From NCBI GenBank assembly GCA_001643675.2, contig LSRY02000051.1, positions 1 to 64,000 on the forward strand: a DNA stretch of 64,000 bases, in the 5' to 3' direction. The notes under the pieces are model-generated. The model had not been told where the DNA came from and did no database searches. It worked only from the letters and a program-made list of their open reading frames with translations. Source of the stretch: Monocercomonoides exilis PA203. Its lineage: Eukaryota; Protista; Preaxostyla. The position numbers and the translations under genes were made by a program. Each line of letters opens with the position of its first letter. The first letter of the stretch is position 1. Shown piece after piece: positions 6,056 to 34,907 of the stretch.

Positions 6056-6077
6056 TTTTGTAATTTTTGTCGAAAAA

Positions 6078-6186
6078 GAAGTATTGAGAATAATTGGTGT
6101 TGAGTGATATTTCGGGTGAGAGGGCCTTCTCAGAGGGAAAAAGCCTTCCCACCCAAAAATATCAATGAAATATTTCTCAAAACTTC
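6078..6186. other. Long imperfect inverted repeat in the satellite unit (first copy shown; present in all units)
   Basis: Nested arms: gaagtattgagaa/ttctcaaaacttc, tgatattt/aaatatca, gggtgagagggc/gccttcccaccc. Confidence 0.85.
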
Positions 6187-6208
6187 ACCAAGTGATGTGA
6201 CAATGCAA

Positions 6209-6250
6209 GAGAGTGTGATGGGAGAGCGTTGCAAGGCGCTCCCCACTCTC
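6209..6250 (+). other. Stem-loop with GCAA loop in the satellite unit (first copy shown)
   Basis: gagagtg/cactctc and gagcgtt-gcaa-ggcgctc, with two G-T wobbles on the + strand. Confidence 0.8.
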
Positions 6251-6365
6251 GACGAGCCGGAAGGAACGCGCTGCGCGCTGCCCTAGGCCTTTTCCAGTCA
6301 ATTTCCCTTATTAACCGAATTTTCTTTGTTTTTTTTTTGCGGGGCGGGGAGGGCGCGGTGAGTGG

Positions 6366-6388
6366 TGTGGCCTGCTGTGCAGGCCACA
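6366..6388. other. Perfect 10-bp inverted repeat with invertible 3-nt loop (first copy shown)
   Basis: TGTGGCCTGC-[TGT or ACA]-GCAGGCCACA; the two loop alleles are exact reverse complements. Confidence 0.95.
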
Positions 6389-9300
6389 GGAGCCAGGGGG
6401 CTATTTACACAAATTTTGTAATTTTTGTCGAAAAAGAAGTATTGAGAATAATTGGTGTTGAGTGATATTTCGGGTGAGAGGGCCTTCTCAGAGGGAAAAA
6501 GCCTTCCCACCCAAAAATATCAATGAAATATTTCTCAAAACTTCACCAAGTGATGTGACAATGCAAGAGAGTGTGATGGGAGAGCGTTGCAAGGCGCTCC
6601 CCACTCTCGACGAGCCGGAAGGAACGCGCTGCGCGCTGCCCTAGGCCTTTTCCAGTCAATTTCCCTTATTAACCGAATTTTCTTTGTTTTTTTTTTGCGG
6701 GGCGGGGAGGGCGCGGTGAGTGGTGTGGCCTGCACAGCAGGCCACAGGAGCCAGGGGGCTATTTACACAAATTTTGTAATTTTTGTCGAAAAAGAAGTAT
6801 TGAGAATAATTGGTGTTGAGTGATATTTCGGGTGAGAGGGCCTTCTCAGAGGGAAAAAGCCTTCCCACCCAAAAATATCAATGAAATATTTCTCAAAACT
6901 TCACCAAGTGATGTGACAATGCAAGAGAGTGTGATGGGAGAGCGTTGCAAGGCGCTCCCCATGCTCTCCGAGCCGGAAGGAACGCGCTGCGCGCTGCCCT
7001 AGGCCTTTTCCAGTCAATTTCCCTTATTAACCGAATTTTCTTTGTTTTTTTTTTGCGGGGCGGGGAGGGCGCGGTGAGTGGTGTGGCCTGCACAGCAGGC
7101 CACAGGAGCCAGGGGGCTATTTACACAAATTTTGTAATTTTTGTCGAAAAAGAAGTATTGAGAATAATTGGTGTTGAGTGATATTTCGGGTGAGAGGGCC
7201 TTCTCAGAGGGAAAAAGCCTTCCCACCCAAAAATATCAATGAAATATTTCTCAAAACTTCACCAAGTGATGTGACAATGCAAGAGAGTGTGATGGGAGAG
7301 CGTTGCAAGGCGCTCCCCATGCTCTCGAGCCGGAAGGAACGCGCTGCGCGCTGCCCTAGGCCTTTTCCAGTCAATTTCCCTTATTAACCGAATTTTCTTT
7401 GTTTTTTTTTTTTGCGGGGCGGGGAGGGCGCGGTGAGGTGGTGTGGCCTGCACAGCAGGCCACAGGAGCCAGGGGGCTATTTACACAAATTTTGTAATTT
7501 TTGTCGAAAAAGAAGTATTGAGAATAATTGGTGTTGAGTGATATTTCGGGTGAGAGGGCCTTCTCAGAGGGAAAAGCCTTCCCACCCAAAAATATCAATG
7601 AAATATTTCTCAAAACTTCACCAAGTGATGTGACAATGCAAGAGAGTGTGATGGGAGAGCGTTGCAAGGCGCTCCCCACTCTCGACGAGCCGGAAGGAAC
7701 GCGCTGCGCGCTGCCCTAGGCCTTTTCCAGTCAATTTCCCTTATTAACCGAATTTTCTTTTGTTTTTTTTTTTGCGGGGCGGGGAGGGCGCGGTGAGTGG
7801 TGTGGCCTGCACAGCAGGCCACAGGAGCCAGGGGGCTATTTACACAAATTTTGTAATTTTTGTCGAAAAAGAAGTATTGAGAATAATTGGTGTTGAGTGA
7901 TATTTCGGGTGAGAGGGCCTTCTCAGAGGGAAAAAGCCTTCCCACCCAAAAATATCAATGAAATATTTCTCAAAACTTCACCAAGTGATGTGACAATGCA
8001 AGAGAGTGTGATGGGAGAGCGTTGCAAGGCGCTCCCCACTCTCGACGAGCCGGAAGGAACGCGCTGCGCGCTGCCCTAGGCCTTTTCCAGTCAATTTCCC
8101 TTATTAACCGAATTTTCTTTTGTTTTTTTTTTTTGCGGGGCGGGGAGGGCGCGGTGAGTGGTGTGGCCTGCACAGCAGGCCACAGGAGCCAGGGGGCTAT
8201 TTACACAAATTTTGTAATTTTTGTCGAAAAAGAAGTATTGAGAATAATTGGTGTTGAGTGATATTTCGGGTGAGAGGGCCTTCTCAGAGGGAAAAGCCTT
8301 CCCACCCAAAAATATCAATGAAATATTTCTCAAAACTTCACCAAGTGATGTGACAATGCAAGAGAGTGTGATGGGAGAGCGTTGCAAGGCGCTCCCCACT
8401 CTCGACGAGCCGGAAGGAACGCTGCGCGCTGCCCTAGGCCTTTTCCAGTCAATTTCCCTTATTAACCGAATTTTCTTTGTTTTTTTTTGCGGGGCGGGGA
8501 GGGCGCGGTGAGTGGTGTGGCCTGCACAGCAGGCCACAGGAGCCAGGGGGCTATTTACACAAATTTTGTAATTTTTGTCGAAAAAGAAGTATTGAGAATA
8601 ATTGGTGTTGAGTGATATTTCGGGTGAGAGGGCCTTCTCAGAGGGAAAAGCCTTCCCACCCAAAAATATCAATGAAATATTTCTCAAAACTTCACCAAGT
8701 GATGTGACAATGCAAGAGAGTGTGATGGGAGAGCGTTGCAAGGCGCTCCCCACTCTCGACGAGCCGGAAGGAACGCGCTGCGCGCTGCCCTAGGCCTTTT
8801 CCAGTCAATTTCCCTTATTAACCGAATTTTCTTTGTTTTTTTTTGCGGGGCGGGGAGGGCGCGGTGAGTGGTGTGGCCTGCACAGCAGGCCACAGGAGCC
8901 AGGGGGCTATTTACACAAATTTTGTAATTTTTGTCGAAAAAGAAGTATTGAGAATAATTGGTGTTGAGTGATATTTCGGGTGAGAGGGCCTTCTCAGAGG
9001 GAAAAGCCTTCCCACCCAAAAATATCAATGAAATATTTCTCAAAACTTCACCAAGTGATGTGACAATGCAAGAGAGTGTGATGGGAGAGCGTTGCAAGGC
9101 GCTCCCCACTCTCGACGAGCCGGAAGGAACGCTGCGCGCTGCCCTAGGCCTTTTCCAGTCAATTTCCCTTATTAACCGAATTTTCTTTGTTTTTTTTTTT
9201 TGCGGGGCGGGGAGGGCGCGGTGAGTGGTGTGGCCTGCACAGCAGGCCACAGGAGCCAGGGGGCTATTTACACAAATTTTGTAATTTTTGTCGAAAAAGA

Positions 9301-12300
9301 AGTATTGAGAATAATTGGTGTTGAGTGATATTTCGGGTGAGAGGGCCTTCTCAGAGGGAAAAAGCCTTCCCACCCAAAAATATCAATGAAATATTTCTCA
9401 AAACTTCACCAAGTGATGTGACAATGCAAGAGAGTGTGATGGGAGAGCGTTGCAAGGCGCTCCCCACTCTCGACGAGCCGGAAGGAACGCGCTGCGCGCT
9501 GCCCTAGGCCTTTTCCAGTCAATTTCCCTTATTAACCGAATTTTCTTTGTTTTTTTTTGCGGGGCGGGGAGGGCGCGGTGAGTGGTGTGGCCTGCACAGC
9601 AGGCCACAGGAGCCAGGGGGCTATTTACACAAATTTTGTAATTTTTGTCGAAAAAGAAGTATTGAGAATAATTGGTGTTGAGTGATATTTCGGGTGAGAG
9701 GGCCTTCTCAGAGGGAAAAAGCCTTCCCACCCAAAAATATCAATGAAATATTTCTCAAAACTTCACCAAGTGATGTGACAATGCAAGAGAGTGTGATGGG
9801 AGAGCGTTGCAAGGCGCTCCCCACTCTCGACGAGCCGGAAGGAACGCGCTGCGCGCTGCCCTAGGCCTTTTCCAGTCAATTTCCCTTATTAACCGAATTT
9901 TCTTTGTTTTTTTTTGCGGGGCGGGGAGGGCGCGGTGAGGTGGTGTGGCCTGCACAGCAGGCCACAGGAGCCAGGGGGCTATTTACACAAATTTTGTAAT
10001 TTTTGTCGAAAAAGAAGTATTGAGAATAATTGGTGTTGAGTGATATTTCGGGTGAGAGGGCCTTCTCAGAGGGAAAAGCCTTCCCACCCAAAAATATCAA
10101 TGAAATATTTCTCAAAACTTCACCAAGTGATGTGACAATGCAAGAGAGTGTGATGGGAGAGCGTTGCAAGGCGCTCCCCACTCTCGACGAGCCGGAAGGA
10201 ACGCGCTGCGCGCTGCCCTAGGCCTTTTCCAGTCAATTTCCCTTATTAACCGAATTTTCTTTGTTTTTTTTTTTGCGGGGCGGGGAGGGCGCGGTGAGTG
10301 GTGTGGCCTGCACAGCAGGCCACAGGAGCCAGGGGGCTATTTACACAAATTTTGTAATTTTTGTCGAAAAAGAAGTATTGAGAATAATTGGTGTTGAGTG
10401 ATATTTCGGGTGAGAGGGCCTTCTCAGAGGGAAAAAGCCTTCCCACCCAAAAATATCAATGAAATATTTCTCAAAACTTCACCAAGTGATGTGACAATGC
10501 AAGAGAGTGTGATGGGAGAGCGTTGCAAGGCGCTCCCCACTCTCGACGAGCCGGAAGGAACGCGCTGCGCGCTGCCCTAGGCCTTTTCCAGTCAATTTCC
10601 CTTATTAACCGAATTTTCTTTGTTTTTTTTTTTTGCGGGGCGGGGAGGGCGCGGTGAGTGGTGTGGCCTGCACAGCAGGCCACAGGAGCCAGGGGGCTAT
10701 TTACACAAATTTTGTAATTTTTGTCGAAAAAGAAGTATTGAGAATAATTGGTGTTGAGTGATATTTCGGGTGAGAGGGCCTTCTCAGAGGGAAAAGCCTT
10801 CCCACCCAAAAATATCAATGAAATATTTCTCAAAACTTCACCAAGTGATGTGACAATGCAAGAGAGTGTGATGGGAGAGCGTTGCAAGGCGCTCCCCACT
10901 CTCGACGAGCCGGAAGGAACGCGCTGCGCGCTGCCCTAGGCCTTTTCCAGTCAATTTCCCTTATTAACCGAATTTTCTTTTGTTTTTTTTTTTGCGGGGC
11001 GGGGAGGGCGCGGTGAGGTGGTGTGGCCTGCTGTGCAGGCCACAGGAGCCAGGGGGCTATTTACACAAATTTTGTAATTTTTGTCGAAAAAGAAGTATTG
11101 AGAATAATTGGTGTTGAGTGATATTTCGGGTGAGAGGGCCTTCTCAGAGGGAAAAGCCTTCCCACCCAAAAATATCAATGAAATATTTCTCAAAACTTCA
11201 CCAAGTGATGTGACAATGCAAGAGAGTGTGATGGGAGAGCGTTGCAAGGCGCTCCCCACTCTCGACGAGCCGGAAGGAACGCGCTGCGCGCTGCCCTAGG
11301 CCTTTTCCAGTCAATTTCCCTTATTAACCGAATTTTCTTTGTTTTTTTTTTTGCGGGGCGGGGAGGGCGCGGTGAGTGGTGTGGCCTGCTGTGCAGGCCA
11401 CAGGAGCCAGGGGGCTATTTACACAAATTTTGTAATTTTTGTCGAAAAAGAAGTATTGAGAATAATTGGTGTTGAGTGATATTTCGGGTGAGAGGGCCTT
11501 CTCAGAGGGAAAAAGCCTTCCCACCCAAAAATATCAATGAAATATTTCTCAAAACTTCACCAAGTGATGTGACAATGCAAGAGAGTGTGATGGGAGAGCG
11601 TTGCAAGGCGCTCCCCACTCTCGACGAGCCGGAAGGAACGCGCTGCGCGCTGCCCTAGGCCTTTTCCAGTCAATTTCCCTTATTAACCGAATTTTCTTTG
11701 TTTTTTTTTTGCGGGGCGGGGAGGGCGCGGTGAGTGGTGTGGCCTGCTGTGCAGGCCACAGGAGCCAGGGGGCTATTTACACAAATTTTGTAATTTTTGT
11801 CGAAAAAGAAGTATTGAGAATAATTGGTGTTGAGTGATATTTCGGGTGAGAGGGCCTTCTCAGAGGGAAAAGCCTTCCCACCCAAAAATATCAATGAAAT
11901 ATTTCTCAAAACTTCACCAAGTGATGTGACAATGCAAGAGAGTGTGATGGGAGAGCGTTGCAAGGCGCTCCCCACTCTCGACGAGCCGGAAGGAACGCGC
12001 TGCGCGCTGCCCTAGGCCTTTTCCAGTCAATTTCCCTTATTAACCGAATTTTCTTTGTTTTTTTTTGCGGGGCGGGGAGGGCGCGGTGAGTGGTGTGGCC
12101 TGCTGTGCAGGCCACAGGAGCCAGGGGGCTATTTACACAAATTTTGTAATTTTTGTCGAAAAAGAAGTATTGAGAATAATTGGTGTTGAGTGATATTTCG
12201 GGTGAGAGGGCCTTCTCAGAGGGAAAAGCCTTCCCACCCAAAAATATCAATGAAATATTTCTCAAAACTTCACCAAGTGATGTGACAATGCAAGAGAGTG

Positions 12301-15300
12301 TGATGGGAGAGCGTTGCAAGGCGCTCCCCACTCTCGACGAGCCGGAAGGAACGCGCTGCGCGCTGCCCTAGGCCTTTTCCAGTCAATTTCCCTTATTAAC
12401 CGAATTTTCTTTTGTTTTTTTTTTTTGCGGGGCGGGGAGGGCGCGGTGAGTGGTGTGGCCTGCTGTGCAGGCCACAGGAGCCAGGGGGCTATTTACACAA
12501 ATTTTGTAATTTTTGTCGAAAAGAAGTATTGAGAATAATTGGTGTTGAGTGATATTTCGGGTGAGAGGGCCTTCTCAGAGGGAAAAGCCTTCCCACCCAA
12601 AAATATCAATGAAATATTTCTCAAAACTTCACCAAGTGATGTGACAATGCAAGAGAGTGTGATGGGAGAGCGTTGCAAGGCGCTCCCCACTCTCGACGAG
12701 CCGGAAGGAACGCGCTGCGCGCTGCCCTAGGCCTTTTCCAGTCAATTTCCCTTATTAACCGAATTTTCTTTGTTTTTTTTTGCGGGGCGGGGAGGGCGCG
12801 GTGAGTGGTGTGGCCTGCTGTGCAGGCCACAGGAGCCAGGGGGCTATTTACACAAATTTTGTAATTTTTGTCGAAAAAGAAGTATTGAGAATAATTGGTG
12901 TTGAGTGATATTTCGGGTGAGAGGGCCTTCTCAGAGGGAAAAGCCTTCCCACCCAAAAATATCAATGAAATATTTCTCAAAACTTCACCAAGTGATGTGA
13001 CAATGCAAGAGAGTGTGATGGGAGAGCGTTGCAAGGCGCTCCCCACTCTCGACGAGCCGGAAGGAACGCGCTGCGCGCTGCCCTAGGCCTTTTCCAGTCA
13101 ATTTCCCTTATTAACCGAATTTTCTTTGTTTTTTTTTTGCGGGGCGGGGAGGGCGCGGTGAGTGGTGTGGCCTGCTGTGCAGGCCACAGGAGCCAGGGGG
13201 CTATTTACACAAATTTTGTAATTTTTGTCGAAAAAGAAGTATTGAGAATAATTGGTGTTGAGTGATATTTCGGGTGAGAGGGCCTTCTCAGAGGGAAAAA
13301 GCCTTCCCACCCAAAAATATCAATGAAATATTTCTCAAAACTTCACCAAGTGATGTGACAATGCAAGAGAGTGTGATGGGAGAGCGTTGCAAGGCGCTCC
13401 CCACTCTCGACGAGCCGGAAGGAACGCGCTGCGCGCTGCCCTAGGCCTTTTCCAGTCAATTTCCCTTATTAACCGAATTTTCTTTTGTTTTTTTTTTTTG
13501 CGGGGCGGGGAGGGCGCGGTGAGTGGTGTGGCCTGCTGTGCAGGCCACAGGAGCCAGGGGGCTATTTACACAAATTTTGTAATTTTTGTCGAAAAAGAAG
13601 TATTGAGAATAATTGGTGTTGAGTGATATTTCGGGTGAGAGGGCCTTCTCAGAGGGAAAAGCCTTCCCACCCAAAAATATCAATGAAATATTTCTCAAAA
13701 CTTCACCAAGTGATGTGACAATGCAAGAGAGTGTGATGGGAGAGCGTTGCAAGGCGCTCCCCACTCTCGACGAGCCGGAAGGAACGCGCTGCGCGCTGCC
13801 CTAGGCCTTTTCCAGTCAATTTCCCTTATTAACCGAATTTTCTTTGTTTTTTTTTGCGGGGCGGGGAGGGCGCGGTGAGTGGTGTGGCCTGCTGTGCAGG
13901 CCACAGGAGCTCAGGGGGCTATTTACACAAATTTTGTAATTTTTGTCGAAAAGAAGTATTGAGAATAATTGGTGTTGAGTGATATTTCGGGTGAGAGGGC
14001 CTTCTCAGAGGGAAAAAGCCTTCCCACCCAAAAATATCAATGAAATATTTCTCAAAACTTCACCAAGTGATGTGACAATGCAAGAGAGTGTGATGGGAGA
14101 GCGTTGCAAGGCGCTCCCCACTCTCGACGAGCCGGAAGGAACGCGCTGCGCGCTGCCCTAGGCCTTTTCCAGTCAATTTCCCTTATTAACCGAATTTTCT
14201 TTGTTTTTTTTTTTTGCGGGGCGGGGAGGGCGCGGTGAGTGGTGTGGCCTGCTGTGCAGGCCACAGGAGCCAGGGGGCTATTTACACAAATTTTGTAATT
14301 TTTGTCGAAAAAGAAGTATTGAGAATAATTGGTGTTGAGTGATATTTCGGGTGAGAGGGCCTTCTCAGAGGGAAAAGCCTTCCCACCCAAAAATATCAAT
14401 GAAATATTTCTCAAAACTTCACCAAGTGATGTGACAATGCAAGAGAGTGTGATGGGAGAGCGTTGCAAGGCGCTCCCCACTCTCGACGAGCCGGAAGGAA
14501 CGCGCTGCGCGCTGCCCTAGGCCTTTTCCAGTCAATTTCCTTATTAACCGAATTTTCTTTTGTTTTTTTTTTTTGCGGGGCGGGGAGGGCGCGGTGAGGT
14601 GGTGTGGCCTGCTGTGCAGGCCACAGGAGCCAGGGGGCTATTTACACAAATTTTGTAATTTTTGTCGAAAAAGAAGTATTGAGAATAATTGGTGTTGAGT
14701 GATATTTCGGGTGAGAGGGCCTTCTCAGAGGGAAAAAGCCTTCCCACCCAAAAATATCAATGAAATATTTCTCAAAACTTCACCAAGTGATGTGACAATG
14801 CAAGAGAGTGTGATGGGAGAGCGTTGCAAGGCGCTCCCCACTCTCGACGAGCCGGAAGGAACGCGCTGCGCGCTGCCCTAGGCCTTTTCCAGTCAATTTC
14901 CCTTATTAACCGAATTTTCTTTGTTTTTTTTTTTGCGGGGCGGGGAGGGCGCGGTGAGTGGTGTGGCCTGCTGTGCAGGCCACAGGAGCCAGGGGGCTAT
15001 TTACACAAATTTTGTAATTTTTGTCGAAAAAGAAGTATTGAGAATAATTGGTGTTGAGTGATATTTCGGGTGAGAGGGCCTTCTCAGAGGGAAAAGCCTT
15101 CCCACCCAAAAATATCAATGAAATATTTCTCAAAACTTCACCAAGTGATGTGACAATGCAAGAGAGTGTGATGGGAGAGCGTTGCAAGGCGCTCCCCACT
15201 CTCGACGAGCCGGAAGGAACGCTGCGCGCTGCCCTAGGCCTTTTCCAGTCAATTTCCCTTATTAACCGAATTTTCTTTGTTTTTTTTTTGCGGGGCGGGG

Positions 15301-18300
15301 AGGGCGCGGTGAGTGGTGTGGCCTGCTGTGCAGGCCACAGGAGCCAGGGGGCTATTTACACAAATTTTGTAATTTTTGTCGAAAAAGAAGTATTGAGAAT
15401 AATTGGTGTTGAGTGATATTTCGGGTGAGAGGGCCTTCTCAGAGGGAAAAGCCTTCCCACCCAAAAATATCAATGAAATATTTCTCAAAACTTCACCAAG
15501 TGATGTGACAATGCAAGAGAGTGTGATGGGAGAGCGTTGCAAGGCGCTCCCCACTCTCGACGAGCCGGAAGGAACGCGCTGCGCGCTGCCCTAGGCCTTT
15601 TCCAGTCAATTTCCCTTATTAACCGAATTTTCTTTGTTTTTTTTTTTGCGGGGCGGGGAGGGCGCGGTGGAGTGGTGTGGCCTGCACAGCAGGCCACAGG
15701 AGCCAGGGGGCTATTTACACAAATTTTGTAATTTTTGTCGAAAAAGAAGTATTGAGAATAATTGGTGTTGAGTGATATTTCGGGTGAGAGGGCCTTCTCA
15801 GAGGGAAAAGCCTTCCCACCCAAAAATATCAATGAAATATTTCTCAAAACTTCACCAAGTGATGTGACAATGCAAGAGAGTGTGATGGGAGAGCGTTGCA
15901 AGGCGCTCCCCACTCTCGACGAGCCGGAAGGAACGCTGCGCGCTGCCCTAGGCCTTTTCCAGTCAATTTCCCTTATTAACCGAATTTTCTTTGTTTTTTT
16001 TTGCGGGGCGGGGAGGGCGCGGTGAGTGGTGTGGCCTGCTGTGCAGGCCACAGGAGCCAGGGGGCTATTTACACAAATTTTGTAATTTTTGTCGAAAAAG
16101 AAGTATTGAGAATAATTGGTGTTGAGTGATATTTCGGGTGAGAGGGCCTTCTCAGAGGGAAAAAGCCTTCCCACCCAAAAATATCAATGAAATATTTCTC
16201 AAAACTTCACCAAGTGATGTGACAATGCAAGAGAGTGTGATGGGAGAGCGTTGCAAGGCGCTCCCCACTCCTCGACGAGCCGGAAGGAACGCGCTGCGCG
16301 CTGCCCTGAGTGGTTGGCCTGCACAGACAAAGGGGGCTATTTACACAAATTTTGTAATTTTTGTCGAAAAAGAAGTATTGAGAATAATTGGTGTTGAGTG
16401 ATATTTCGGGTGAGAGGGCCTTCTCAGAGGGAAAAAGCCTTCCCACCCAAAAATATCAATGAAATATTTCTCAAAACTTCACCAAGTGATGTGACAATGC
16501 AAGAGAGTGTGATGGGAGAGCGTTGCAAGGCGCTCCCCACTCTCGACGAGCCGGAAGGAACGCGCTGCGCGCTGCCCTAGGCCTTTCCAGTCAATTTCCC
16601 TTATTAACCGAATTTTCTTTGTTTTTTTTTGCGGGGCGGGGAGGGCGCGGTGAGTGGTGTGGCCTGCTGTGCAGGCCACAGGAGCCAGGGGGCTATTTAC
16701 ACAAATTTTGTAATTTTTGTCGAAAAAGAAGTATTGAGAATAATTGGTGTTGAGTGATATTTCGGGTGAGAGGGCCTTCTCAGAGGGAAAAAGCCTTCCC
16801 ACCCAAAAAATATCAATGAAATATTTCTCAAAACTTCACCAAGTGATGTGACAATGCAAGAGAGTGTGATGGGAGAGCGTTGCAAGGCGCTCCCCACTCC
16901 TCGACGAGCCGGAAGGAACGCGCTGCGCGCTGCCCTAGGCCTTTTCCAGTCAATTTCCCTTATTAACCGAATTTTCTTTGTTTTTTTTTTTGCGGGGCGG
17001 GGAGGGCGCGGTGAGGTGGTGTGGCCTGCTGTGCAGGCCACAGGAGCCAGGGGGCTATTTACACAAATTTTGTAATTTTTGTCGAAAAAGAAGTATTGAG
17101 AATAATTGGTGTTGAGTGATATTTCGGGTGAGAGGGCCTTCTCAGAGGGAAAAAGCCTTCCCACCCAAAAATATCAATGAAATATTTCTCAAAACTTCAC
17201 CAAGTGATGTGACAATGCAAGAGAGTGTGATGGGAGAGCGTTGCAAGGCGCTCCCCACTCTCGACGAGCCGGAAGGAACGCGCTGCGCGCTGCCCTAGGC
17301 CTTTTCCAGTCAATTTCCCTTATTAACCGAATTTTCTTTGTTTTTTTTTTTGCGGGGCGGGGAGGGCGCGGTGAGTGGTGTGGCCTGCACAGCAGGCCAC
17401 AGGAGCCAGGGGGCTATTTACACAAATTTTGTAATTTTTGTCGAAAAAGAAGTATTGAGAATAATTGGTGTTGAGTGATATTTCGGGTGAGAGGGCCTTC
17501 TCAGAGGGAAAAAGCCTTCCCACCCAAAAATATCAATGAAATATTTCTCAAAACTTCACCAAGTGATGTGACAATGCAAGAGAGTGTGATGGGAGAGCGT
17601 TGCAAGGCGCTCCCCACTCTCGACGAGCCGGAAGGAACGCGCTGCGCGCTGCCCTAGGCCTTTTCCAGTCAATTTCCCTTATTAACCGAATTTTCTTTGT
17701 TTTTTTTTTTGCGGGGCGGGGAGGGCGCGGTGAGTGGTGTGGCCTGCACAGCAGGCCACAGGAGCCAGGGGGCTATTTACACAAATTTTGTAATTTTTGT
17801 CGAAAAAGAAGTATTGAGAATAATTGGTGTTGAGTGATATTTCGGGTGAGAGGGCCTTCTCAGAGGGAAAAGCCTTCCCACCCAAAAATATCAATGAAAT
17901 ATTTCTCAAAACTTCACCAAGTGATGTGACAATGCAAGAGAGTGTGATGGGAGAGCGTTGCAAGGCGCTCCCCACTCTCGACGAGCCGGAAGGAACGCGC
18001 TGCGCGCTGCCCTAGGCCTTTTCCAGTCAATTTCCCTTATTAACCGAATTTTCTTTGTTTTTTTTTTTGCGGGGCGGGGAGGGCGCGGTGAGTGGTGTGG
18101 CCTGCTGTGCAGGCCACAGGAGCCAGGGGGCTATTTACACAAATTTTGTAATTTTTGTCGAAAAAGAAGTATTGAGAATAATTGGTGTTGAGTGATATTT
18201 CGGGTGAGAGGGCCTTCTCAGAGGGAAAAAGCCTTCCCACCCAAAAATATCAATGAAATATTTCTCAAAACTTCACCAAGTGATGTGACAATGCAAGAGA

Positions 18301-24300: not shown

Positions 24301-27300
24301 TCTCAGAGGGGAAAAAGCCTTCCCACCCAAAAATATCAATGAAATATTTCTCAAAACTTCACCAAGTGATGTGACAATGCAAGAGAGTGTGATGGGAGAG
24401 CGTTGCAAGGCGCTCCCCACTCTCGACGAGCCGGAAGGAACGCGCTGCGCGCTGCCCTAGGCCTTTTCCAGTCAATTTCCCTTATTAACCGAATTTTCTT
24501 TGTTTTTTTTTTTTGCGGGGCGGGGAGGGCGCGGTGAGTGGTGTGGCCTGCTGTGCAGGCCACAGGAGCCAGGGGGCTATTTACACAAATTTTGTAATTT
24601 TTGTCGAAAAAGAAGTATTGAGAATAATTGGTGTTGAGTGATATTTCGGGTGAGAGGGCCTTCTCAGAGGGAAAAAGCCTTCCCACCCAAAAATATCAAT
24701 GAAATATTTCTCAAAACTTCACCAAGTGATGTGACAATGCAAGAGAGTGTGATGGGAGAGCGTTGCAAGGCGCTCCCCACTCTCGACGAGCCGGAAGGAA
24801 CGCGCTGCGCGCTGCCCTAGGCCTTTTCCAGTCAATTTCCCTTATTAACCGAATTTTCTTTTGTTTTTTTTTTTGCGGGGCGGGGAGGGCGCGGTGAGTG
24901 GTGTGGCCTGCTGTGCAGGCCACAGGAGCCAGGGGGCTATTTACACAAATTTTGTAATTTTTGTCGAAAAAGAAGTATTGAGAATAATTGGTGTTGAGTG
25001 ATATTTCGGGTGAGAGGGCCTTCTCAGAGGGAAAAGCCTTCCCACCCAAAAATATCAATGAAATATTTCTCAAAACTTCACCAAGTGATGTGACAATGCA
25101 AGAGAGTGTGATGGGAGAGCGTTGCAAGGCGCTCCCCACTCTCGACGAGCCGGAAGGAACGCGCTGCGCGCTGCCCTAGGCCTTTTCCAGTCAATTTCCC
25201 TTATTAACCGAATTTTCTTTGTTTTTTTTTGCGGGGCGGGGAGGGCGCGGTGAGTGGTGTGGCCTGCTGTGCAGGCCACAGGAGCCAGGGGGCTATTTAC
25301 ACAAATTTTGTAATTTTTGTCGAAAAAGAAGTATTGAGAATAATTGGTGTTGAGTGATATTTCGGGTGAGAGGGCCTTCTCAGAGGGAAAAAGCCTTCCC
25401 ACCCAAAAATATCAATGAAATATTTCTCAAAACTTCACCAAGTGATGTGACAATGCAAGAGAGTGTGATGGGAGAGCGTTGCAAGGCGCTCCCCACTCTC
25501 GACGAGCCGGAAGGAACGCGCTGCGCGCTGCCCTAGGCCTTTTCCAGTCAATTTCCCTTATTAACCGAATTTTCTTTGTTTTTTTTTTTGCGGGGCGGGG
25601 AGGGCGCGGTGAGTGGTGTGGCCTGCTGTGCAGGCCACAGGAGCCAGGGGGCTATTTACACAAATTTTGTAATTTTTGTCGAAAAAGAAGTATTGAGAAT
25701 AATTGGTGTTGAGTGATATTTCGGGTGAGAGGGCCTTCTCAGAGGGAAAAAGCCTTCCCACCCAAAAATATCAATGAAATATTTCTCAAAACTTCACCAA
25801 GTGATGTGACAATGCAAGAGAGTGTGATGGGAGAGCGTTGCAAGGCGCTCCCCACTCTCGACGAGCCGGAAGGAACGCGCTGCGCGCTGCCCTAGGCCTT
25901 TTCCAGTCAATTTCCCTTATTAACCGAATTTTCTTTTGTTTTTTTTTTTGCGGGGCGGGGAGGGCGCGGTGAGTGGTGTGGCCTGCTGTGCAGGCCACAG
26001 GAGCCAGGGGGCTATTTACACAAATTTTGTAATTTTTGTCGAAAAAGAAGTATTGAGAATAATTGGTGTTGAGTGATATTTCGGGTGAGAGGGCCTTCTC
26101 AGAGGGAAAAAGCCTTCCCACCCAAAAATATCAATGAAATATTTCTCAAAACTTCACCAAGTGATGTGACAATGCAAGAGAGTGTGATGGGAGAGCGTTG
26201 CAAGGCGCTCCCCACTCTCGACGAGCCGGAAGGAACGCGCTGCGCGCTGCCCTAGGCCTTTTCCAGTCAATTTCCCTTATTAACCGAATTTTCTTTGTTT
26301 TTTTTTTTGCGGGGCGGGGAGGGCGCGGTGAGTGGTGTGGCCTGCTGTGCAGGCCACAGGAGCCAGGGGGCTATTTACACAAATTTTGTAATTTTTGTCG
26401 AAAAAGAAGTATTGAGAATAATTGGTGTTGAGTGATATTTCGGGTGAGAGGGCCTTCTCAGAGGGAAAAGCCTTCCCACCCAAAAATATCAATGAAATAT
26501 TTCTCAAAACTTCACCAAGTGATGTGACAATGCAAGAGAGTGTGATGGGAGAGCGTTGCAAGGCGCTCCCCACTCTCGACGAGCCGGAAGGAACGCGCTG
26601 CGCGCTGCCCTAGGCCTTTTCCAGTCAATTTCCCTTATTAACCGAATTTTCTTTTGTTTTTTTTTTGCGGGGCGGGGAGGGCGCGGTGAGTGGTGTGGCC
26701 TGCTGTGCAGGCCACAGGAGCCAGGGGGCTATTTACACAAATTTTGTAATTTTTGTCGAAAAAGAAGTATTGAGAATAATTGGTGTTGAGTGATATTTCG
26801 GGTGAGAGGGCCTTCTCAGAGGGAAAAGCCTTCCCACCCAAAAATATCAATGAAATATTTCTCAAAACTTCACCAAGTGATGTGACAATGCAAGAGAGTG
26901 TGATGGGAGAGCGTTGCAAGGCGCTCCCCACTCTCGACGAGCCGGAAGGAACGCGCTGCGCGCTGCCCTAGGCCTTTTCCAGTCAATTTCCCTTATTAAC
27001 CGAATTTTCTTTGTTTTTTTTTTTGCGGGGCGGGGAGGGCGCGGTGAGTGGTGTGGCCTGCTGTGCAGGCCACAGGAGCCAGGGGGCTATTTACACAAAT
27101 TTTGTAATTTTTGTCGAAAAAGAAGTATTGAGAATAATTGGTGTTGAGTGATATTTCGGGTGAGAGGGCCTTCTCAGAGGGAAAAAGCCTTCCCACCCAA
27201 AAATATCAATGAAATATTTCTCAAAACTTCACCAAGTGATGTGACAATGCAAGAGAGTGTGATGGGAGAGCGTTGCAAGGCGCTCCCCACTCTCGACGAG

Positions 27301-30300
27301 CCGGAAGGAACGCGCTGCGCGCTGCCCTAGGCCTTTTCCAGTCAATTTCCCTTATTAACCGAATTTTCTTTGTTTTTTTTTTTGCGGGGCGGGGAGGGCG
27401 CGGTGAGTGGTGTGGCCTGCTGTGCAGGCCACAGGAGCCAGGGGGCTATTTACACAAATTTTGTAATTTTTGTCGAAAAAGAAGTATTGAGAATAATTGG
27501 TGTTGAGTGATATTTCGGGTGAGAGGGCCTTCTCAGAGGGAAAAAGCCTTCCCACCCAAAAATATCAATGAAATATTTCTCAAAACTTCACCAAGTGATG
27601 TGACAATGCAAGAGAGTGTGATGGGAGAGCGTTGCAAGGCGCTCCCCACTCTCGACGAGCCGGAAGGAACGCGCTGCGCGCTGCCCTAGGCCTTTTCCAG
27701 TCAATTTCCCTTATTAACCGAATTTTCTTTGTTTTTTTTTTTGCGGGGCGGGGAGGGCGCGGTGAGTGGTGTGGCCTGCTGTGCAGGCCACAGGAGCCAG
27801 GGGGCTATTTACACAAATTTTGTAATTTTTGTCGAAAAAGAAGTATTGAGAATAATTGGTGTTGAGTGATATTTCGGGTGAGAGGGCCTTCTCAGAGGGA
27901 AAAGCCTTCCCACCCAAAAATATCAATGAAATATTTCTCAAAACTTCACCAAGTGATGTGACAATGCAAGAGAGTGTGATGGGAGAGCGTTGCAAGGCGC
28001 TCCCCACTCTCGACGAGCCGGAAGGAACGCGCTGCGCGCTGCCCTAGGCCTTTTCCAGTCAATTTCCCTTATTAACCGAATTTTCTTTGTTTTTTTTTTT
28101 GCGGGGCGGGGAGGGCGCGGTGAGTGGTGTGGCCTGCTGTGCAGGCCACAGGAGCCAGGGGGCTATTTACACAAATTTTGTAATTTTTGTCGAAAAAGAA
28201 GTATTGAGAATAATTGGTGTTGAGTGATATTTCGGGTGAGAGGGCCTTCTCAGAGGGAAAAAGCCTTCCCACCCAAAAATATCAATGAAATATTTCTCAA
28301 AACTTCACCAAGTGATGTGACAATGCAAGAGAGTGTGATGGGAGAGCGTTGCAAGGCGCTCCCCACTCTCGACGAGCCGGAAGGAACGCGCTGCGCGCTG
28401 CCCTAGGCCTTTTCCAGTCAATTTCCCTTATTAACCGAATTTTCTTTGTTTTTTTTTGCGGGGCGGGGAGGGCGCGGTGAGTGGTGTGGCCTGCTGTGCA
28501 GGCCACAGGAGCCAGGGGGCTATTTACACAAATTTTGTAATTTTTGTCGAAAAAGAAGTATTGAGAATAATTGGTGTTGAGTGATATTTCGGGTGAGAGG
28601 GCCTTCTCAGAGGGAAAAAGCCTTCCCACCCAAAAATATCAATGAAATATTTCTCAAAACTTCACCAAGTGATGTGACAATGCAAGAGAGTGTGATGGGA
28701 GAGCGTTGCAAGGCGCTCCCCACTCTCGACGAGCCGGAAGGAACGCGCTGCGCGCTGCCCTAGGCCTTTTCCAGTCAATTTCCCTTATTAACCGAATTTT
28801 CTTTGTTTTTTTGCGGGGCGGGGAGGGCGCGGTGAGTGGTGTGGCCTGCTGTGCAGGCCACAGGAGCCAGGGGGCTATTTACACAAATTTTGTAATTTTT
28901 GTCGAAAAAGAAGTATTGAGAATAATTGGTGTTGAGTGATATTTCGGGTGAGAGGGCCTTCTCAGAGGGAAAAAGCCTTCCCACCCAAAAATATCAATGA
29001 AATATTTCTCAAAACTTCACCAAGTGATGTGACAATGCAAGAGAGTGTGATGGGAGAGCGTTGCAAGGCGCTCCCCACTCTCGACGAGCCGGAAGGAACG
29101 CGCTGCGCGCTGCCCTAGGCCTTTTCCAGTCAATTTCCCTTATTAACCGAATTTTCTTTGTTTTTTTTTTTGCGGGGCGGGGAGGGCGCGGTGAGTGGTG
29201 TGGCCTGCTGTGCAGGCCACAGGAGCCAGGGGGCTATTTACACAAATTTTGTAATTTTTGTCGAAAAAGAAGTATTGAGAATAATTGGTGTTGAGTGATA
29301 TTTCGGGTGAGAGGGCCTTCTCAGAGGGAAAAAGCCTTCCCACCCAAAAATATCAATGAAATATTTCTCAAAACTTCACCAAGTGATGTGACAATGCAAG
29401 AGAGTGTGATGGGAGAGCGTTGCAAGGCGCTCCCCACTCTCGACGAGCCGGAAGGAACGCGCTGCGCGCTGCCCTAGGCCTTTTCCAGTCAATTTCCCTT
29501 ATTAACCGAATTTTCTTTGTTTTTTTTTGCGGGGCGGGGAGGGCGCGGTGAGTGGTGTGGCCTGCTGTGCAGGCCACAGGAGCCAGGGGGCTATTTACAC
29601 AAATTTTGTAATTTTTGTCGAAAAAGAAGTATTGAGAATAATTGGTGTTGAGTGATATTTCGGGTGAGAGGGCCTTCTCAGAGGGAAAAAGCCTTCCCAC
29701 CCAAAAATATCAATGAAATATTTCTCAAAACTTCACCAAGTGATGTGACAATGCAAGAGAGTGTGATGGGAGAGCGTTGCAAGGCGCTCCCCACTCTCGA
29801 CGAGCCGGAAGGAACGCGCTGCGCGCTGCCCTAGGCCTTTTCCAGTCAATTTCCCTTATTAACCGAATTTTCTTTGTTTTTTTTTTTGCGGGGCGGGGAG
29901 GGCGCGGTGAGGTGGTGTGGCCTGCTGTGCAGGCCACAGGAGCCAGGGGGCTATTTACACAAATTTTGTAATTTTTGTCGAAAAAGAAGTATTGAGAATA
30001 ATTGGTGTTGAGTGATATTTCGGGTGAGAGGGCCTTCTCAGAGGGAAAAGCCTTCCCACCCAAAAATATCAATGAAATATTTCTCAAAACTTCACCAAGT
30101 GATGTGACAATGCAAGAGAGTGTGATGGGAGAGCGTTGCAAGGCGCTCCCCACTCTCGACGAGCCGGAAGGAACGCGCTGCGCGCTGCCCTAGGCCTTTT
30201 CCAGTCAATTTCCCTTATTAACCGAATTTTCTTTTGTTTTTTTTTTTGCGGGGCGGGGAGGGCGCGGTGAGTGGTGTGGCCTGCTGTGCAGGCCACAGGA

Positions 30301-33300
30301 GCCAGGGGGCTATTTACACAAATTTTGTAATTTTTGTCGAAAAAGAAGTATTGAGAATAATTGGTGTTGAGTGATATTTCGGGTGAGAGGGCCTTCTCAG
30401 AGGGAAAAAGCCTTCCCACCCAAAAATATCAATGAAATATTTCTCAAAACTTCACCAAGTGATGTGACAATGCAAGAGAGTGTGATGGGAGAGCGTTGCA
30501 AGGCGCTCCCCACTCTCGACGAGCCGGAAGGAACGCGCTGCGCGCTGCCCTAGGCCTTTTCCAGTCAATTTCCCTTATTAACCGAATTTTCTTTGTTTTT
30601 TTTTTTGCGGGGCGGGGAGGGCGCGGTGAGTGGTGTGGCCTGCTGTGCAGGCCACAGGAGCCAGGGGGCTATTTACACAAATTTTGTAATTTTTGTCGAA
30701 AAAGAAGTATTGAGAATAATTGGTGTTGAGTGATATTTCGGGTGAGAGGGCCTTCTCAGAGGGAAAAAGCCTTCCCACCCAAAAATATCAATGAAATATT
30801 TCTCAAAACTTCACCAAGTGATGTGACAATGCAAGAGAGTGTGATGGGAGAGCGTTGCAAGGCGCTCCCCACTCTCGACGAGCCGGAAGGAACGCGCTGC
30901 GCGCTGCCCTAGGCCTTTTCCAGTCAATTTCCCTTATTAACCGAATTTTCTTTTGTTTTTTTTTTTTGCGGGGCGGGGAGGGCGCGGTGAGTGGTGTGGC
31001 CTGCTGTGCAGGCCACAGGAGCCAGGGGGCTATTTACACAAATTTTGTAATTTTTGTCGAAAAAGAAGTATTGAGAATAATTGGTGTTGAGTGATATTTC
31101 GGGTGAGAGGGCCTTCTCAGAGGGAAAAAGCCTTCCCACCCAAAAATATCAATGAAATATTTCTCAAAACTTCACCAAGTGATGTGACAATGCAAGAGAG
31201 TGTGATGGGAGAGCGTTGCAAGGCGCTCCCCACTCTCGACGAGCCGGAAGGAACGCGCTGCGCGCTGCCCTAGGCCTTTTCCAGTCAATTTCCCTTATTA
31301 ACCGAATTTTCTTTGTTTTTTTTGCGGGGCGGGGAGGGCGCGGTGAGGTGGTGTGGCCTGCTGTGCAGGCCACAGGAGCCAGGGGGCTATTTACACAAAT
31401 TTTGTAATTTTTGTCGAAAAAGAAGTATTGAGAATAATTGGTGTTGAGTGATATTTCGGGTGAGAGGGCCTTCTCAGAGGGGAAAAAGCCTTCCCACCCA
31501 AAAATATCAATGAAATATTTCTCAAAACTTCACCAAGTGATGTGACAATGCAAGAGAGTGTGATGGGAGAGCGTTGCAAGGCGCTCCCCACTCTCGACGA
31601 GCCGGAAGGAACGCGCTGCGCGCTGCCCTAGGCCTTTTCCAGTCAATTTCCCTTATTAACCGAATTTTCTTTGTTTTTTTGCGGGGCGGGGAGGGCGCGG
31701 TGAGTGGTGTGGCCTGCTGTGCAGGCCACAGGAGCCAGGGGGCTATTTACACAAATTTTGTAATTTTTGTCGAAAAAGAAGTATTGAGAATAATTGGTGT
31801 TGAGTGATATTTCGGGTGAGAGGGCCTTCTCAGAGGGAAAAAAGCCTTCCCACCCAAAAATATCAATGAAATATTTCTCAAAACTTCACCAAGTGATGTG
31901 ACAATGCAAGAGAGTGTGATGGGAGAGCGTTGCAAGGCGCTCCCCACTCTCGACGAGCCGGAAGGAACGCGCTGCGCGCTGCCCTAGGCCTTTTCCAGTC
32001 AATTTCCCTTATTAACCGAATTTTCTTTGTTTTTTTTTGCGGGGCGGGGAGGGCGCGGTGAGTGGTGTGGCCTGCTGTGCAGGCCACAGGAGCTCAGGGG
32101 GCTATTTACACAAATTTTGTAATTTTTGTCGAAAAAGAAGTATTGAGAATAATTGGTGTTGAGTGATATTTCGGGTGAGAGGGCCTTCTCAGAGGGAAAA
32201 AGCCTTCCCACCCAAAAATATCAATGAAATATTTCTCAAAACTTCACCAAGTGATGTGACAATGCAAGAGAGTGTGATGGGAGAGCGTTGCAAGGCGCTC
32301 CCCACTCTCGACGAGCCGGAAGGAACGCGCTGCGCGCTGCCCTAGGCCTTTTCCAGTCAATTTCCCTTATTAACCGAATTTTCTTTTGTTTTTTTTTTTG
32401 CGGGGCGGGGAGGGCGCGGTGAGGTGGTGTGGCCTGCTGTGCAGGCCACAGGAGCCAGGGGGCTATTTACACAAATTTTGTAATTTTTGTCGAAAAAGAA
32501 GTATTGAGAATAATTGGTGTTGAGTGATATTTCGGGTGAGAGGGCCTTCTCAGAGGGAAAAAGCCTTCCCACCCAAAAATATCAATGAAATATTTCTCAA
32601 AACTTCACCAAGTGATGTGACAATGCAAGAGAGTGTGATGGGAGAGCGTTGCAAGGCGCTCCCCACTCTCGACGAGCCGGAAGGAACGCGCTGCGCGCTG
32701 CCCTAGGCCTTTTCCAGTCAATTTCCCTTATTAACCGAATTTTCTTTGTTTTTTTTTTTGCGGGGCGGGGAGGGCGCGGTGAGTGGTGTGGCCTGCTGTG
32801 TGAGCCACAGGGGGCTATTTACACAAATTTTGTAATTTTTGTCGAAAAGAAGTATTGAGAATAATTGGTGTTGAGTGATATTTCGGGTGAGAGGGCCTTC
32901 TCAGAGGGAAAAAGCCTTCCCACCCAAAAATATCAATGAAATATTTCTCAAAACTTCACCAAGTGATGTGACAATGCAAGAGAGTGTGATGGGAGAGCGT
33001 TGCAAGGCGCTCCCCACTCTCGACGAGCCGGAAGGAACGCGCTGCGCGCTGCCCTAGGCCTTTTCCAGTCAATTTCCCTTATTAACCGAATTTTCTTTGT
33101 TTTTTTTTGCGGGGCGGGGAGGGCGCGGTGAGGTGGTGTGGCCTGCTGTGCAGGCCACAGGAGCCAGGGGGCTATTTACACAAATTTTGTAATTTTTGTC
33201 GAAAAAGAAGTATTGAGAATAATTGGTGTTGAGTGATATTTCGGGTGAGAGGGCCTTCTCAGAGGGAAAAAGCCTTCCCACCCAAAAATATCAATGAAAT

Positions 33301-34795
33301 ATTTCTCAAAACTTCACCAAGTGATGTGACAATGCAAGAGAGTGTGATGGGAGAGCGTTGCAAGGCGCTCCCCACTCTCGACGAGCCGGAAGGAACGCGC
33401 TGCGCGCTGCCCTAGGCCTTTTCCAGTCAATTTCCCTTATTAACCGAATTTTCTTTGTTTTTTTTTGCGGGGCGGGGAGGGCGCGGTGAGTGGTGTGGCC
33501 TGCTGTGCAGGCCACAGGAGCCAGGGGGCTATTTACACAAATTTTGTAATTTTTGTCGAAAAAGAAGTATTGAGAATAATTGGTGTTGAGTGATATTTCG
33601 GGTGAGAGGGCCTTCTCAGAGGGAAAAAGCCTTCCCACCCAAAAATATCAATGAAATATTTCTCAAAACTTCACCAAGTGATGTGACAATGCAAGAGAGT
33701 GTGATGGGAGAGCGTTGCAAGGCGCTCCCCACTCTCGACGAGCCGGAAGGAACGCGCTGCGCGCTGCCCTAGGCCTTTTCCAGTCAATTTCCCTTATTAA
33801 CCGAATTTTCTTTGTTTTTTTTTTGCGGGGCGGGGAGGGCGCGGTGAGTGGTGTGGCCTGCTGTGCAGGCCACAGGAGCCAGGGGGCTATTTACACAAAT
33901 TTTGTAATTTTTGTCGAAAAAGAAGTATTGAGAATAATTGGTGTTGAGTGATATTTCGGGTGAGAGGGCCTTCTCAGAGGGAAAAAGCCTTCCCACCCAA
34001 AAATATCAATGAAATATTTCTCAAAACTTCACCAAGTGATGTGACAATGCAAGAGAGTGTGATGGGAGAGCGTTGCAAGGCGCTCCCCACTCTCGACGAG
34101 CCGGAAGGAACGCGCTGCGCGCTGCCCTAGGCCTTTTCCAGTCAATTTCCCTTATTAACCGAATTTTCTTTGTTTTTTTTTTGCGGGGCGGGGAGGGCGC
34201 GGTGAGTGGTGTGGCCTGCTGTGCAGGCCACAGGAGCCAGGGGGCTATTTACACAAATTTTGTAATTTTTGTCGAAAAAGAAGTATTGAGAATAATTGGT
34301 GTTGAGTGATATTTCGGGTGAGAGGGCCTTCTCAGAGGGAAAAAGCCTTCCCACCCAAAAATATCAATGAAATATTTCTCAAAACTTCACCAAGTGATGT
34401 GACAATGCAAGAGAGTGTGATGGGAGAGCGTTGCAAGGCGCTCCCCACTCTCGACGAGCCGGAAGGAACGCGCTGCGCGCTGCCCTAGGCCTTTTCCAGT
34501 CAATTTCCCTTATTAACCGAATTTTCTTTGTTTTTTTTTTGCGGGGCGGGGAGGGCGCGGTGAGTGGTGTGGCCTGCACAGCAGGCCACAGGAGCCAGGG
34601 GGCTATTTACACAAATTTTGTAATTTTTGTCGAAAAAGAAGTATTGAGAATAATTGGTGTTGAGTGATATTTCGGGTGAGAGGGCCTTCTCAGAGGGAAA
34701 AAGCCTTCCCACCCAAAAATATCAATGAAATATTTCTCAAAACTTCACCAAGTGATGTGACAATGCAAGAGAGTGTGATGGGAGAGCGTTGCAAG

Positions 34796-34907
34796 GCGCT
34801 CCCCACTCTCGACGAGCCGAAGTCACGTCGCTTCGCACAAAATGCTCGCTTCGCTCGCATTTCGTGCTCGCTCCTTAGACTTTTGCTCGTCGAGCTTAGG
34901 GGAGCGC
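34796..34907 (-). other. 112-nt fold-back spanning the array/unique-DNA junction, capped by a GCGAAGC mini-hairpin on the bottom strand
   Basis: Arms: gcgctcccc(34796-804)/ggggagcgc(34899-907), ctcgacgagc(34808-817)/gctcgtcgag(34885-894), aagtc/gactt, gcacaaaatgc(34835-845)/gcatttcgtgc(34857-867). Loop tcgcttcgctc reads GAGCGAAGCGA on the minus strand. Confidence 0.9.

Follow-up and report, generated by a model that had tools for sequence, protein, structure and literature searches.

In a subtelomeric satellite of Monocercomonoides exilis PA203, the three-nucleotide loop of a short, perfect palindrome exists in two states, TGT and ACA. The inversion of the loop is exact, it has a polarity, it is restricted to one satellite lineage, and no larger inversions accompany it; these four points were observed directly. 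With a probability of roughly two in three, the polymorphism is a hairpin-mediated template-switch "minute inversion", a known class of mutation, the products of which were spread by unequal exchange.

The genome is represented by a Nanopore assembly. The window, meaning the whole stretch of DNA that was analysed, comprises 64,000 nucleotides of one contig (referred to as C49) and contains 80 units of the 358-bp satellite, each with a 23-bp palindrome of the form TGTGGCCTGC-NNN-GCAGGCCACA. The features of this chromosome end are listed below, with strand where one is assigned (A, ACA; T, TGT).

1-3458: terminal telomere tract, (CCCTAA)n on the plus strand (TRF: period 6, 583 copies)
3459-6005, plus strand: distal 2.5-kb block with a truncated recombinase-Myb remnant (ORFs 3477-3992 and 4004-4669)
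6006-6052: internal telomere seed of about 8 CCCTAA/CCTAA units, touching satellite unit 1
6054-34819, plus strand: array of the 358-bp satellite, 80 units and a terminal 206-bp partial unit, all head to tail (TRF, unit cutting and alignment)
6366-6388: palindrome of unit 1, loop TGT (ancestral state); the matching unit of C100 is ACA
6724-10684: units 2-13, block of 12 ACA loops (derived state)
11022-15339: units 14-26, block of 13 TGT loops
15676-18118: units 27-34, mixed zone A T a T T A A T, where a is a degenerate ACA site at 16307-16335
18453-22772: units 35-47, ACA block broken by a single TGT (unit 44, 21672-21694)
23108-34232: units 48-79, block of 32 TGT loops, including a degenerate site at 32787-32809
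34568-34590: palindrome of unit 80, the last full unit, loop ACA; the matching last unit of C48 is TGT
34876-41989, minus strand: 7.1-kb module with a recombinase-Myb gene (37624-40125, minus strand), ending at a CCTAACCTAA seed (41980-41989)

Satellite units range from 350 to 362 bp in length through homopolymer noise. The distal block is the same as its counterpart on C100 save for homopolymer gaps, and ORF 4004-4669 within it contains a Myb domain (Pfam PF00249, E=1.1e-5). The 7.1-kb recombinase-Myb module, also present on C48 and C31, is context and lies outside the flip itself.

An exact search of the window found 78 perfect 23-mers, of which 50 have TGT and 28 have ACA as their plus-strand loop, where shuffled sequence gives an expectation of none. 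Each state is also represented by one degenerate site: the TGT site has the 3' arm GTGAGCCACA, and the ACA site lies in a unit from which 86 bp are deleted. As 24-mers, the two loop alleles are GGCCTGCTGTGCAGGCCACAGGAG and GGCCTGCACAGCAGGCCACAGGAG. The resulting totals of 51 TGT and 29 ACA, as well as the order of states along the units, reproduce those given in the original prediction. That prediction had also described an exact loop inversion inside a palindrome, without intermediate loops, as the main substitution-type polymorphism of the array, and the present data agree on each count. All loops in the window are either TGT or ACA, and 3/3 bases are changed to the exact reverse complement with no intermediates. 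When 81 units were aligned with MAFFT, clear substitution-type polymorphism was seen in the three loop columns and nowhere else; the other variable columns are the lengths of an A-run and a T-run, a CG-dinucleotide deletion shared by 6 units, and a G-run insertion. A second cluster of template-switch-like appearance is found in unit 3. Along the array the loop states form 14 runs against 38 expected at random, and not one of 100,000 shuffles gave so few.

The symmetry of the palindrome is exactly 10+3+10 and extends no further. The folding energy of the single-stranded DNA is about -12 kcal/mol for both loop states and on both strands, with a z of about -3.5 to -3.9, and the two alleles are of equal length. 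The flip is probably neutral, since the energy of the hairpin is unchanged and both arms are intact. When a TGT unit was used in a minus-strand BLAST search, the matches were the 23-mers of the 28 ACA units and nothing else; no inverted units or segments larger than the 23-mer were found in the array. A role of the satellite unit as an RNA gene was rejected: it had no Rfam match at the gathering score, only weak matches to miRNA models far below threshold at E<=1, and no tRNA in a tRNA scan. A word search with a 74-aa ORF spanning the palindrome, made for independent protein evidence on both alleles, returned no match. Two metagenome matches to the 24-mer with the loop left free were dismissed as chance, being bacterial contigs of 64-65% GC in which homology ends at 27-29 nt.

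Across the whole genome, sites oriented by their flanks comprise 399 TGT and 57 ACA. All 57 ACA loops are found on C49 (28), C100 (18) and C48 (11), in a single young satellite subfamily, and the diagnostic flank of this subfamily (marker sequence CTATTTACAC, 122 matches) is restricted to the same three contigs. Exact TGT units elsewhere amount to 323: 122 on C5, 24 on C9, 12 on C64, and a further 165 sites in the remaining contigs. The difference between 29/80 ACA in the window and 0/323 among exact units outside C49, C48 and C100 is significant (Fisher p = 4e-23). In these 323 units the palindrome and its 36-nt surroundings are identical, and the 122-unit array of C5 is equally homogeneous. 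The other subfamilies (C5/C64 and C9) diverge by 41-50 substitutions per unit, and all are TGT. Because the exact units of these diverged subfamilies are uniformly TGT, TGT is, as judged from sequence comparison, the ancestral state of the loop. C9 also holds an odd satellite-telomere mosaic. Apart from merged loops at the start of C48, no further loop variants occur in the genome except a single CGT and a single ATA, the latter in the low-quality start of C48.

Template-switch mutations are known to invert loops in perfectly paired hairpins (PMC8794818), and a pathway of this kind would account for the pattern in M. exilis. During replication of the palindrome, the growing strand would use one arm to pair with the complementary strand or to fold back on itself, copy the 3-nt loop off the wrong strand, and then switch back. 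A TGT/TGT mismatch bubble would be left, which the next round of replication would convert into a duplex with a reverse-complemented loop. We infer both the template-switch step and the number of events: TGT may have changed to ACA in a single event, or in a few at most, within the lineage of a young satellite subfamily whose sequence is almost uniform. Both states would then have spread into blocks by unequal sister-chromatid exchange, slippage and segmental duplication within the array, and by copying of the terminal module between two chromosome ends, with the short alternating runs arising from small duplications across block borders. Since ACA is confined to one subfamily and the 323 other units are TGT, one event together with array dynamics is enough. 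Among the causes listed in the original prediction, template switching is the preferred reading; its inferences of recurrent inversion and of a possible tyrosine-recombinase (YR) substrate are not supported. Cruciform resolution and reciprocal recombination between the 10-bp arms were considered and set aside: duplex arms at a distance of 3 bp cannot synapse, and on the present data both routes predict the same as template switching.

The three contigs with ACA loops appear to represent two chromosome ends that share a terminal module and are otherwise substitution-identical, C100 presumably belonging to the C48 end. C48 and C49 are alike in gross layout, with a distal, ACA-rich part containing a lone TGT, followed by a long proximal TGT block. 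This likeness suggests that the mixture of TGT and ACA pre-dates the copying of the chromosome end. The first and last units of the array can be anchored, and in both cases their loop state differs between the two ends. Over 10.7 kb of anchored sequence there are six substitutions in all, and these make up the two border loops.

Such differences could also be expected from a recurrent hot spot, in which a template switch or cruciform/hairpin processing, for example during break-induced replication, repeatedly flips loops in situ at a high rate, so that many of the 13 state changes would be independent flips or back-flips. This alternative is doubtful, yet it keeps some weight. Besides the two differing border units, it is favored by the 7/14 runs that consist of single units, by the equal energy of forward and back flips, and by the second template-switch-like cluster in unit 3. 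A deletion or duplication of one unit at each border, as by single-unit slippage, however, explains the border differences equally well. The short runs lie at block borders or array ends, and no isolated flip interrupts the interior of the 12-, 13- or 32-unit block. Above all, not one of the 323 units with an identical palindrome and 36-nt context, including those of the homogeneous C5 array, is ACA. The earlier description of the site as recurrently inverted is therefore not supported, ACA being confined to one young subfamily at two near-identical ends. At the level of single units, which have no internal linked marker, descent cannot be told apart from repeated flipping; the search for linked variants inside units found homopolymer noise only.

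It is slightly less probable still that a fast process at chromosome ends, such as break-induced replication of the terminal recombinase-Myb module, produces recurrent in-situ flips, and that the strictly conserved palindrome is a putative binding site for a dimeric protein of the same system. If in-situ flips did recur, the six border-loop substitutions would point to a flip rate that exceeds the point-mutation rate by a factor of thousands, and the hairpin would be a natural, multi-copy reporter of a chromosome-end process.

An artefact of sequencing or assembly is unlikely and is given only a small chance. According to this explanation there is one true loop state, and the other results from strand-specific basecalling, base modification, read correction or polishing within the palindrome. 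The assembly was made with Canu on Nanopore reads and polished with Nanopolish and Pilon, and its authors call the multi-copy regions poorly polished. The array, a repeat of 28.7 kb with near-identical units, is a consensus of Nanopore data only, from reads with an N50 of 8.9 kb, and the order and count of its units may be unreliable. In favor of an artefact are also the variable unit lengths, the C9 mosaic, and the start of C48, where collapsed or merged loops (T, TGTGTA, ATA and CGT) resemble a consensus of conflicting reads. An artefact would nevertheless need to generate a flawless three-base reverse complement at 57 sites and to spare 323 sites of the same 36-nt context in arrays of both contig orientations (genome-wide, 309 of the 399 TGT sites are forward and 90 are reverse). 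Moreover, stochastic miscalling does not yield pure blocks of 12-32 units, and loop state showed no association with homopolymer-error patterns (p 0.3-1.0).

Site-specific recombination, in which the palindrome would be the core site of the neighboring tyrosine recombinase-Myb protein and its loop would be flipped by that protein, is very improbable. An 8-7-8 parse with GCTGTGC as the spacer is formally possible, against a natural symmetry of 10-3-10; a Crypton-like recombinase-Myb gene lies 3 kb away, and the invariance of the palindrome and its surroundings across satellite subfamilies would suit a putative protein-binding site. The identity of the protein as a recombinase has a lead, not proof: the nearest Atlas look-alike clusters carry PF00589 and resemble bacterial integrases (structural TM 0.78 by matched model, 0.54 by query), and there is a weak PHROG integrase match (E=0.014), whereas Pfam and PDB sequence searches on the protein found the Myb domain alone. 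The palindrome, however, stands at no border of array or module. The array starts 23 nt past where a palindrome would end and stops at unit offset 206, about 230 nt past the last palindrome, while the edges of the module are telomere-repeat seeds. No palindrome occurs in the modules or anywhere in the window outside the array, and the satellite unit has no homology to the recombinase modules or other flanks. The module copy on C31 (99.5% identical) is without satellite or palindrome, and the arrays of C5 and C64, which lie about 4 kb from a paralogous recombinase gene, are without flips. All units of the array are head to tail with no inverted unit or segment; whole-unit deletion or integration would be indistinguishable from unequal exchange. 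By its established mechanism, a tyrosine recombinase swaps strands between two sites with matching spacers and cannot invert the spacer of a single site, and arms of 10 bp at a distance of 3 bp cannot synapse as duplex DNA. The proposal that the palindrome is a YR substrate is thus unsupported, given its position in the interior of the unit, its absence from the module, the satellite-free C31 copy, the lack of inverted units, and the unflipped C5 and C64 arrays.

The finding reveals no new mechanism, nor does it tie the satellite to the telomere-associated recombinase-Myb elements. It provides a clean nuclear hairpin-loop inversion caught polymorphic within one tandem array; sister subfamilies set its polarity, and a second, near-identical chromosome end allows comparison. 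In an array so uniform in other respects, loop state alone serves as a barcode of array history, by which unequal exchange, and possibly template switching, could be tracked at the chromosome ends of M. exilis. The finding also calls for caution in assembly, as the loop alleles are the only ordering information available to an assembler in a repeat of 28.7 kb.

Several known systems resemble this site in part. In parvovirus inverted terminal repeats and poxvirus telomeres, the unpaired part of a hairpin likewise occurs in two reverse-complement forms. Flip/flop in these viruses takes place at the ends of molecules, arises in each round of hairpin transfer, and gives a ratio of about 1:1. The sites in M. 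exilis, in contrast, occupy internal positions at a distance of 2.9 to 31 kb from the telomere tract; their ratio is 51:29 in inherited blocks and 323:0 elsewhere, and most arrays are in a single state.

The recombination sites loxP, FRT and dif consist of inverted arms around an asymmetric spacer of 6-8 bp. Dyad symmetry, an asymmetric center and a recombinase-like gene nearby are shared with M. exilis. If a 7-bp spacer is assumed, however, the M. exilis arms would be just 8 bp long; the sites are not at junctions, the palindrome does not accompany the module elsewhere, and no intervening DNA is inverted. Spacer inversion is not a known product of enzymes acting on sites of the loxP/FRT/dif type.

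Quasipalindromes in bacteria and yeast are reportedly hot spots of template switching, according to the work of Ripley and of Lovett and colleagues. These share with the M. exilis site a replication-coupled strand switching at short, GC-rich inverted repeats. Quasipalindrome events usually perfect an imperfect palindrome, whereas the palindrome of M. exilis is perfect already, and therefore the loop alone records the event.

Template-switch mutations in rRNA and microRNA genes (Monttinen and Loytynoja 2022, PMC8794818) are alike in being one-step, multi-base changes, explained by a short stretch of copying from the complementary or nascent strand across a perfect stem, and a "loop inversion only" category is present in that work. 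Their inference rested on phylogenies of transcribed RNA genes, whereas the polarity in M. exilis is derived from paralogous satellite subfamilies.

Small, hairpin-associated inversions of 4-50 bp are pervasive in plastomes (PMC12371153, citing Kelchner and Wendel 1996). These minute inversions of non-coding chloroplast DNA share with M. exilis an exact reverse complement of the loop, an intact stem and apparent neutrality. With 3 nt, the M. exilis loop is small in comparison with the plastid size range. Homoplasy is typical of the plastid inversions, while the M. exilis case can be explained without recurrence. In contrast to the plastid examples, the M. exilis site is nuclear and subtelomeric and exists in 80-140 tandem copies; therefore, both loop states coexist in one array as blocks.

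The satellite array, with telomeric sequence on one side and a recombinase-Myb module on the other, is placed in the window as follows:

Window start: (CCCTAA)n tract, 3.46 kb
After the terminal (CCCTAA)n tract, before the internal seed: 2.5-kb block
6006-6052: internal telomere seed (a short telomere-repeat piece)
6054-34819: 358-bp tandem repeat
34876-41989: 7.1-kb recombinase-Myb module
37624-40125, minus strand: open reading frame with a C-terminal Myb domain
41980-41989: CCTAACCTAA seed, the proximal bound of the module
49542-55565, plus strand: open reading frame of 2007 aa without Pfam match

Within the array, perfect copies of the palindrome TGTGGCCTGC-NNN-GCAGGCCACA number 78, of which 50 have the loop TGT and 28 its reverse complement ACA; none would be expected by chance. 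Two degenerate sites, a TGT at 32787 and an ACA at 16307-16335 in a unit shortened by an 86-bp deletion, bring the totals to 51 and 29, the same numbers as in the original prediction, whose block order was also reproduced exactly. The loop states form 14 runs along the array, against 38 expected under random order. When all units were aligned, clear substitution-type polymorphism was confined to the three columns of the loop. Other variation consists of A/T run lengths, a deleted CG dinucleotide and an insertion in a G run; such indels are the usual Nanopore noise, and in the window units loop state was not associated with this length-type noise (p 0.3-1.0).

Two smaller irregularities were observed among the units. 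Among TGT units, the A run of AGAGGG(A)nGCC has a mean length of 4.37 distally and 4.83 proximally (p=0.003), independently of loop state; the shorter distal runs reflect either consensus quality that differs with position or a genuine A4/A5 polymorphism. In unit 3 (6955-6970), CATGCTCTCCGAG stands where the consensus is CACTCTCGACGAG, and complementarity to the upstream GGAGAGC grows from 5 to 7 nt; this may be another cluster resembling template switching, or a cluster of errors.

The palindrome can fold into a hairpin with a 10 bp stem and a 3-nt loop, with about -12 kcal/mol as single-stranded DNA, equal for both states and both strands. No inverted units were found in the array; the minus-strand matches of a TGT unit are limited to the 23-mers in the 28 ACA units. 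A change of three bases to their exact reverse complement, between perfect arms and in an array nearly free of point substitutions, is characteristic of hairpin-mediated inversion.

Genome-wide counts were made over 101 contigs totalling 82,301,135 bases. There are 472 occurrences of the palindrome, and orientation by the non-palindromic flank GGAG gives 399 TGT and 57 ACA. All of the ACA sites lie on three contigs: C49, which contains the window (28), C100 (18) and C48 (11). These form one of three satellite subfamilies, the others being C5/C64 and C9, with consensus sequences 41-50 substitutions per unit apart; the flank diagnostic for C49/C48/C100 has 122 matches, found only there. Exact TGT units number 122 in C5 (plus one CGT), 24 in C9 and 12 in C64 (plus two degenerate), and a further 165 exact TGT sites, available as site counts only, lie on contigs outside these six. 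Comparing 29/80 ACA in the window with 0/323 among exact units outside C49/C48/C100 gives p = 4e-23. The 122-unit C5 array is as homogeneous as that of the window: no substitution polymorphism reaches 3% there, and flips are absent. Since the examined exact units of the C5/C64 and C9 subfamilies are all TGT, this state is ancestral and ACA derived in one lineage. Despite the 41-50 substitutions, three segments are invariant across the three subfamilies (window, C5, C9, C64): 36 nt running through the palindrome, a GC-rich block of 40 nt (CGAGCCGGAAGGAACGCGCTGCGCGCTGCCCTAGGCCTTT) and another block of 33 nt, which suggests constraint or biased homogenisation of a GC-rich core.

The ACA lineage is present at two near-identical ends. 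C100, when reverse-complemented, contains a telomere, the 2.5-kb block of the window and its seed, then 18 units, all ACA. C48 begins within an array; the consensus is poor in its distal, ACA-rich part. Then follow 26 units with TGT, and after them a flank that is identical to window 34781-41989. Past the CCTAACCTAA seed C48 and C49 are unrelated; therefore, these are two chromosome ends with one terminal module in common, and C100 probably represents the tip that C48 lacks. Window 3459-6420 differs from C100 by 3 mismatches, all in the unit 1 loop, and window 34256-41989 differs from C48 by 3, all in the last-unit loop. Thus, in 10.7 kb of anchored sequence the six mismatches are confined to the two border-unit loops, and the change of both loops without any surrounding substitution shows fast turnover of loop state in the anchored units. 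Such turnover does not reveal its cause, as deletion or duplication of one unit at either border gives an equal result; slippage between a border unit and its neighbour could produce it. The arrays differ elsewhere in length and pattern. A T insertion (GGAGCTCAGG) is found in about 11/19 units, roughly alternating, of the proximal TGT block of C48 (11300-17800) and in 2/80 window units (13886 and 32069, both TGT), so the arrays are distinct, not one locus assembled twice.

A single flip from TGT to ACA in the ancestor of the young C49/C48/C100 subfamily is sufficient to explain these data. Unequal exchange and segmental duplication, both ordinary processes in tandem arrays, would then turn one state border into several, and small duplications across a border may have left units 27-34 alternating in short runs and, likewise, produced the T-A3-T motif of units 44-48. 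The original prediction of a recurrently inverted site is partly supported: it holds for inversion; recurrence, in which loops invert frequently along the array, is unproven, and the blocks of 12, 13 and 32 units, pure throughout their interiors, speak against random flips being frequent.

That the two loop states are a sequencing or assembly artefact is improbable. The assembly of Monocercomonoides exilis PA203 (101 contigs, 82.3 Mbp) was built from Nanopore reads (N50 8.9 kb) with Canu 1.8 and polished with Nanopolish and ten Pilon rounds (PMC8767320), a paper in which the word "satellite" is absent. The array is Nanopore consensus in a repeat beyond short-read polishing (PMC8767320), loops are collapsed and merged at the start of C48, and C9 contains an odd satellite-telomere mosaic; caution is therefore needed on unit order and number. 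However, it is hard to imagine an artefact that writes a perfect reverse complement at 57 sites and affects 0/323 sites with the identical 36-nt context, in TGT arrays lying in both contig orientations (309 forward, 90 reverse). Independent data on the loop alleles were not found by protein word search or metagenome scan. In the C9 mosaic (8500-9750), in-register satellite units have CCCTAA runs written over every 10-40 nt, grading into a pure internal telomere tract before a second 358-bp array; this reflects either telomere and satellite reads fused into a consensus chimera or an odd but real structure.

The central region of the minus-strand Myb reading frame resembles eukaryotic Crypton-like tyrosine recombinases (Atlas look-alikes in clusters carrying PF00589, structural TM 0.78 by the match), with a weak PHROG integrase match; Pfam and PDB sequence searches gave nothing besides the Myb domain. 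Paralogues occur at many chromosome ends, and the module is common to three: the window, C48 (18029-25140; 0 mismatches) and the right end of C31 (18 mismatches, 99.5% identical), where a 60-bp CCCTAA tract forms the distal bound at the position of the C49/C48 satellite. Tyrosine recombinases act on a pair of inverted sites whose spacers match and invert the DNA in between; they are not known to flip the spacer of a single site. The suggestion that the palindrome is a substrate of this protein is unsupported, nothing linking the two: the inversion lies outside established recombinase action, the palindrome is internal to the unit, away from the array borders, and missing from the module as well as from everything else in the window outside the array, the C31 module has a telomere tract in place of the satellite, and the C5 and C64 arrays, about 4 kb from a paralogous open recombinase frame, show no flips.

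Template switching during replication is the documented cause of such changes, in which the loops of perfectly paired hairpins are inverted and the stem is untouched (PMC8794818), and small hairpin-associated inversions are pervasive in plastid DNA (PMC12371153, citing Kelchner and Wendel 1996 and Catalano et al. 2009). The satellite flip adds a new example to this known class of mutation, and its setting is unusual and convenient.
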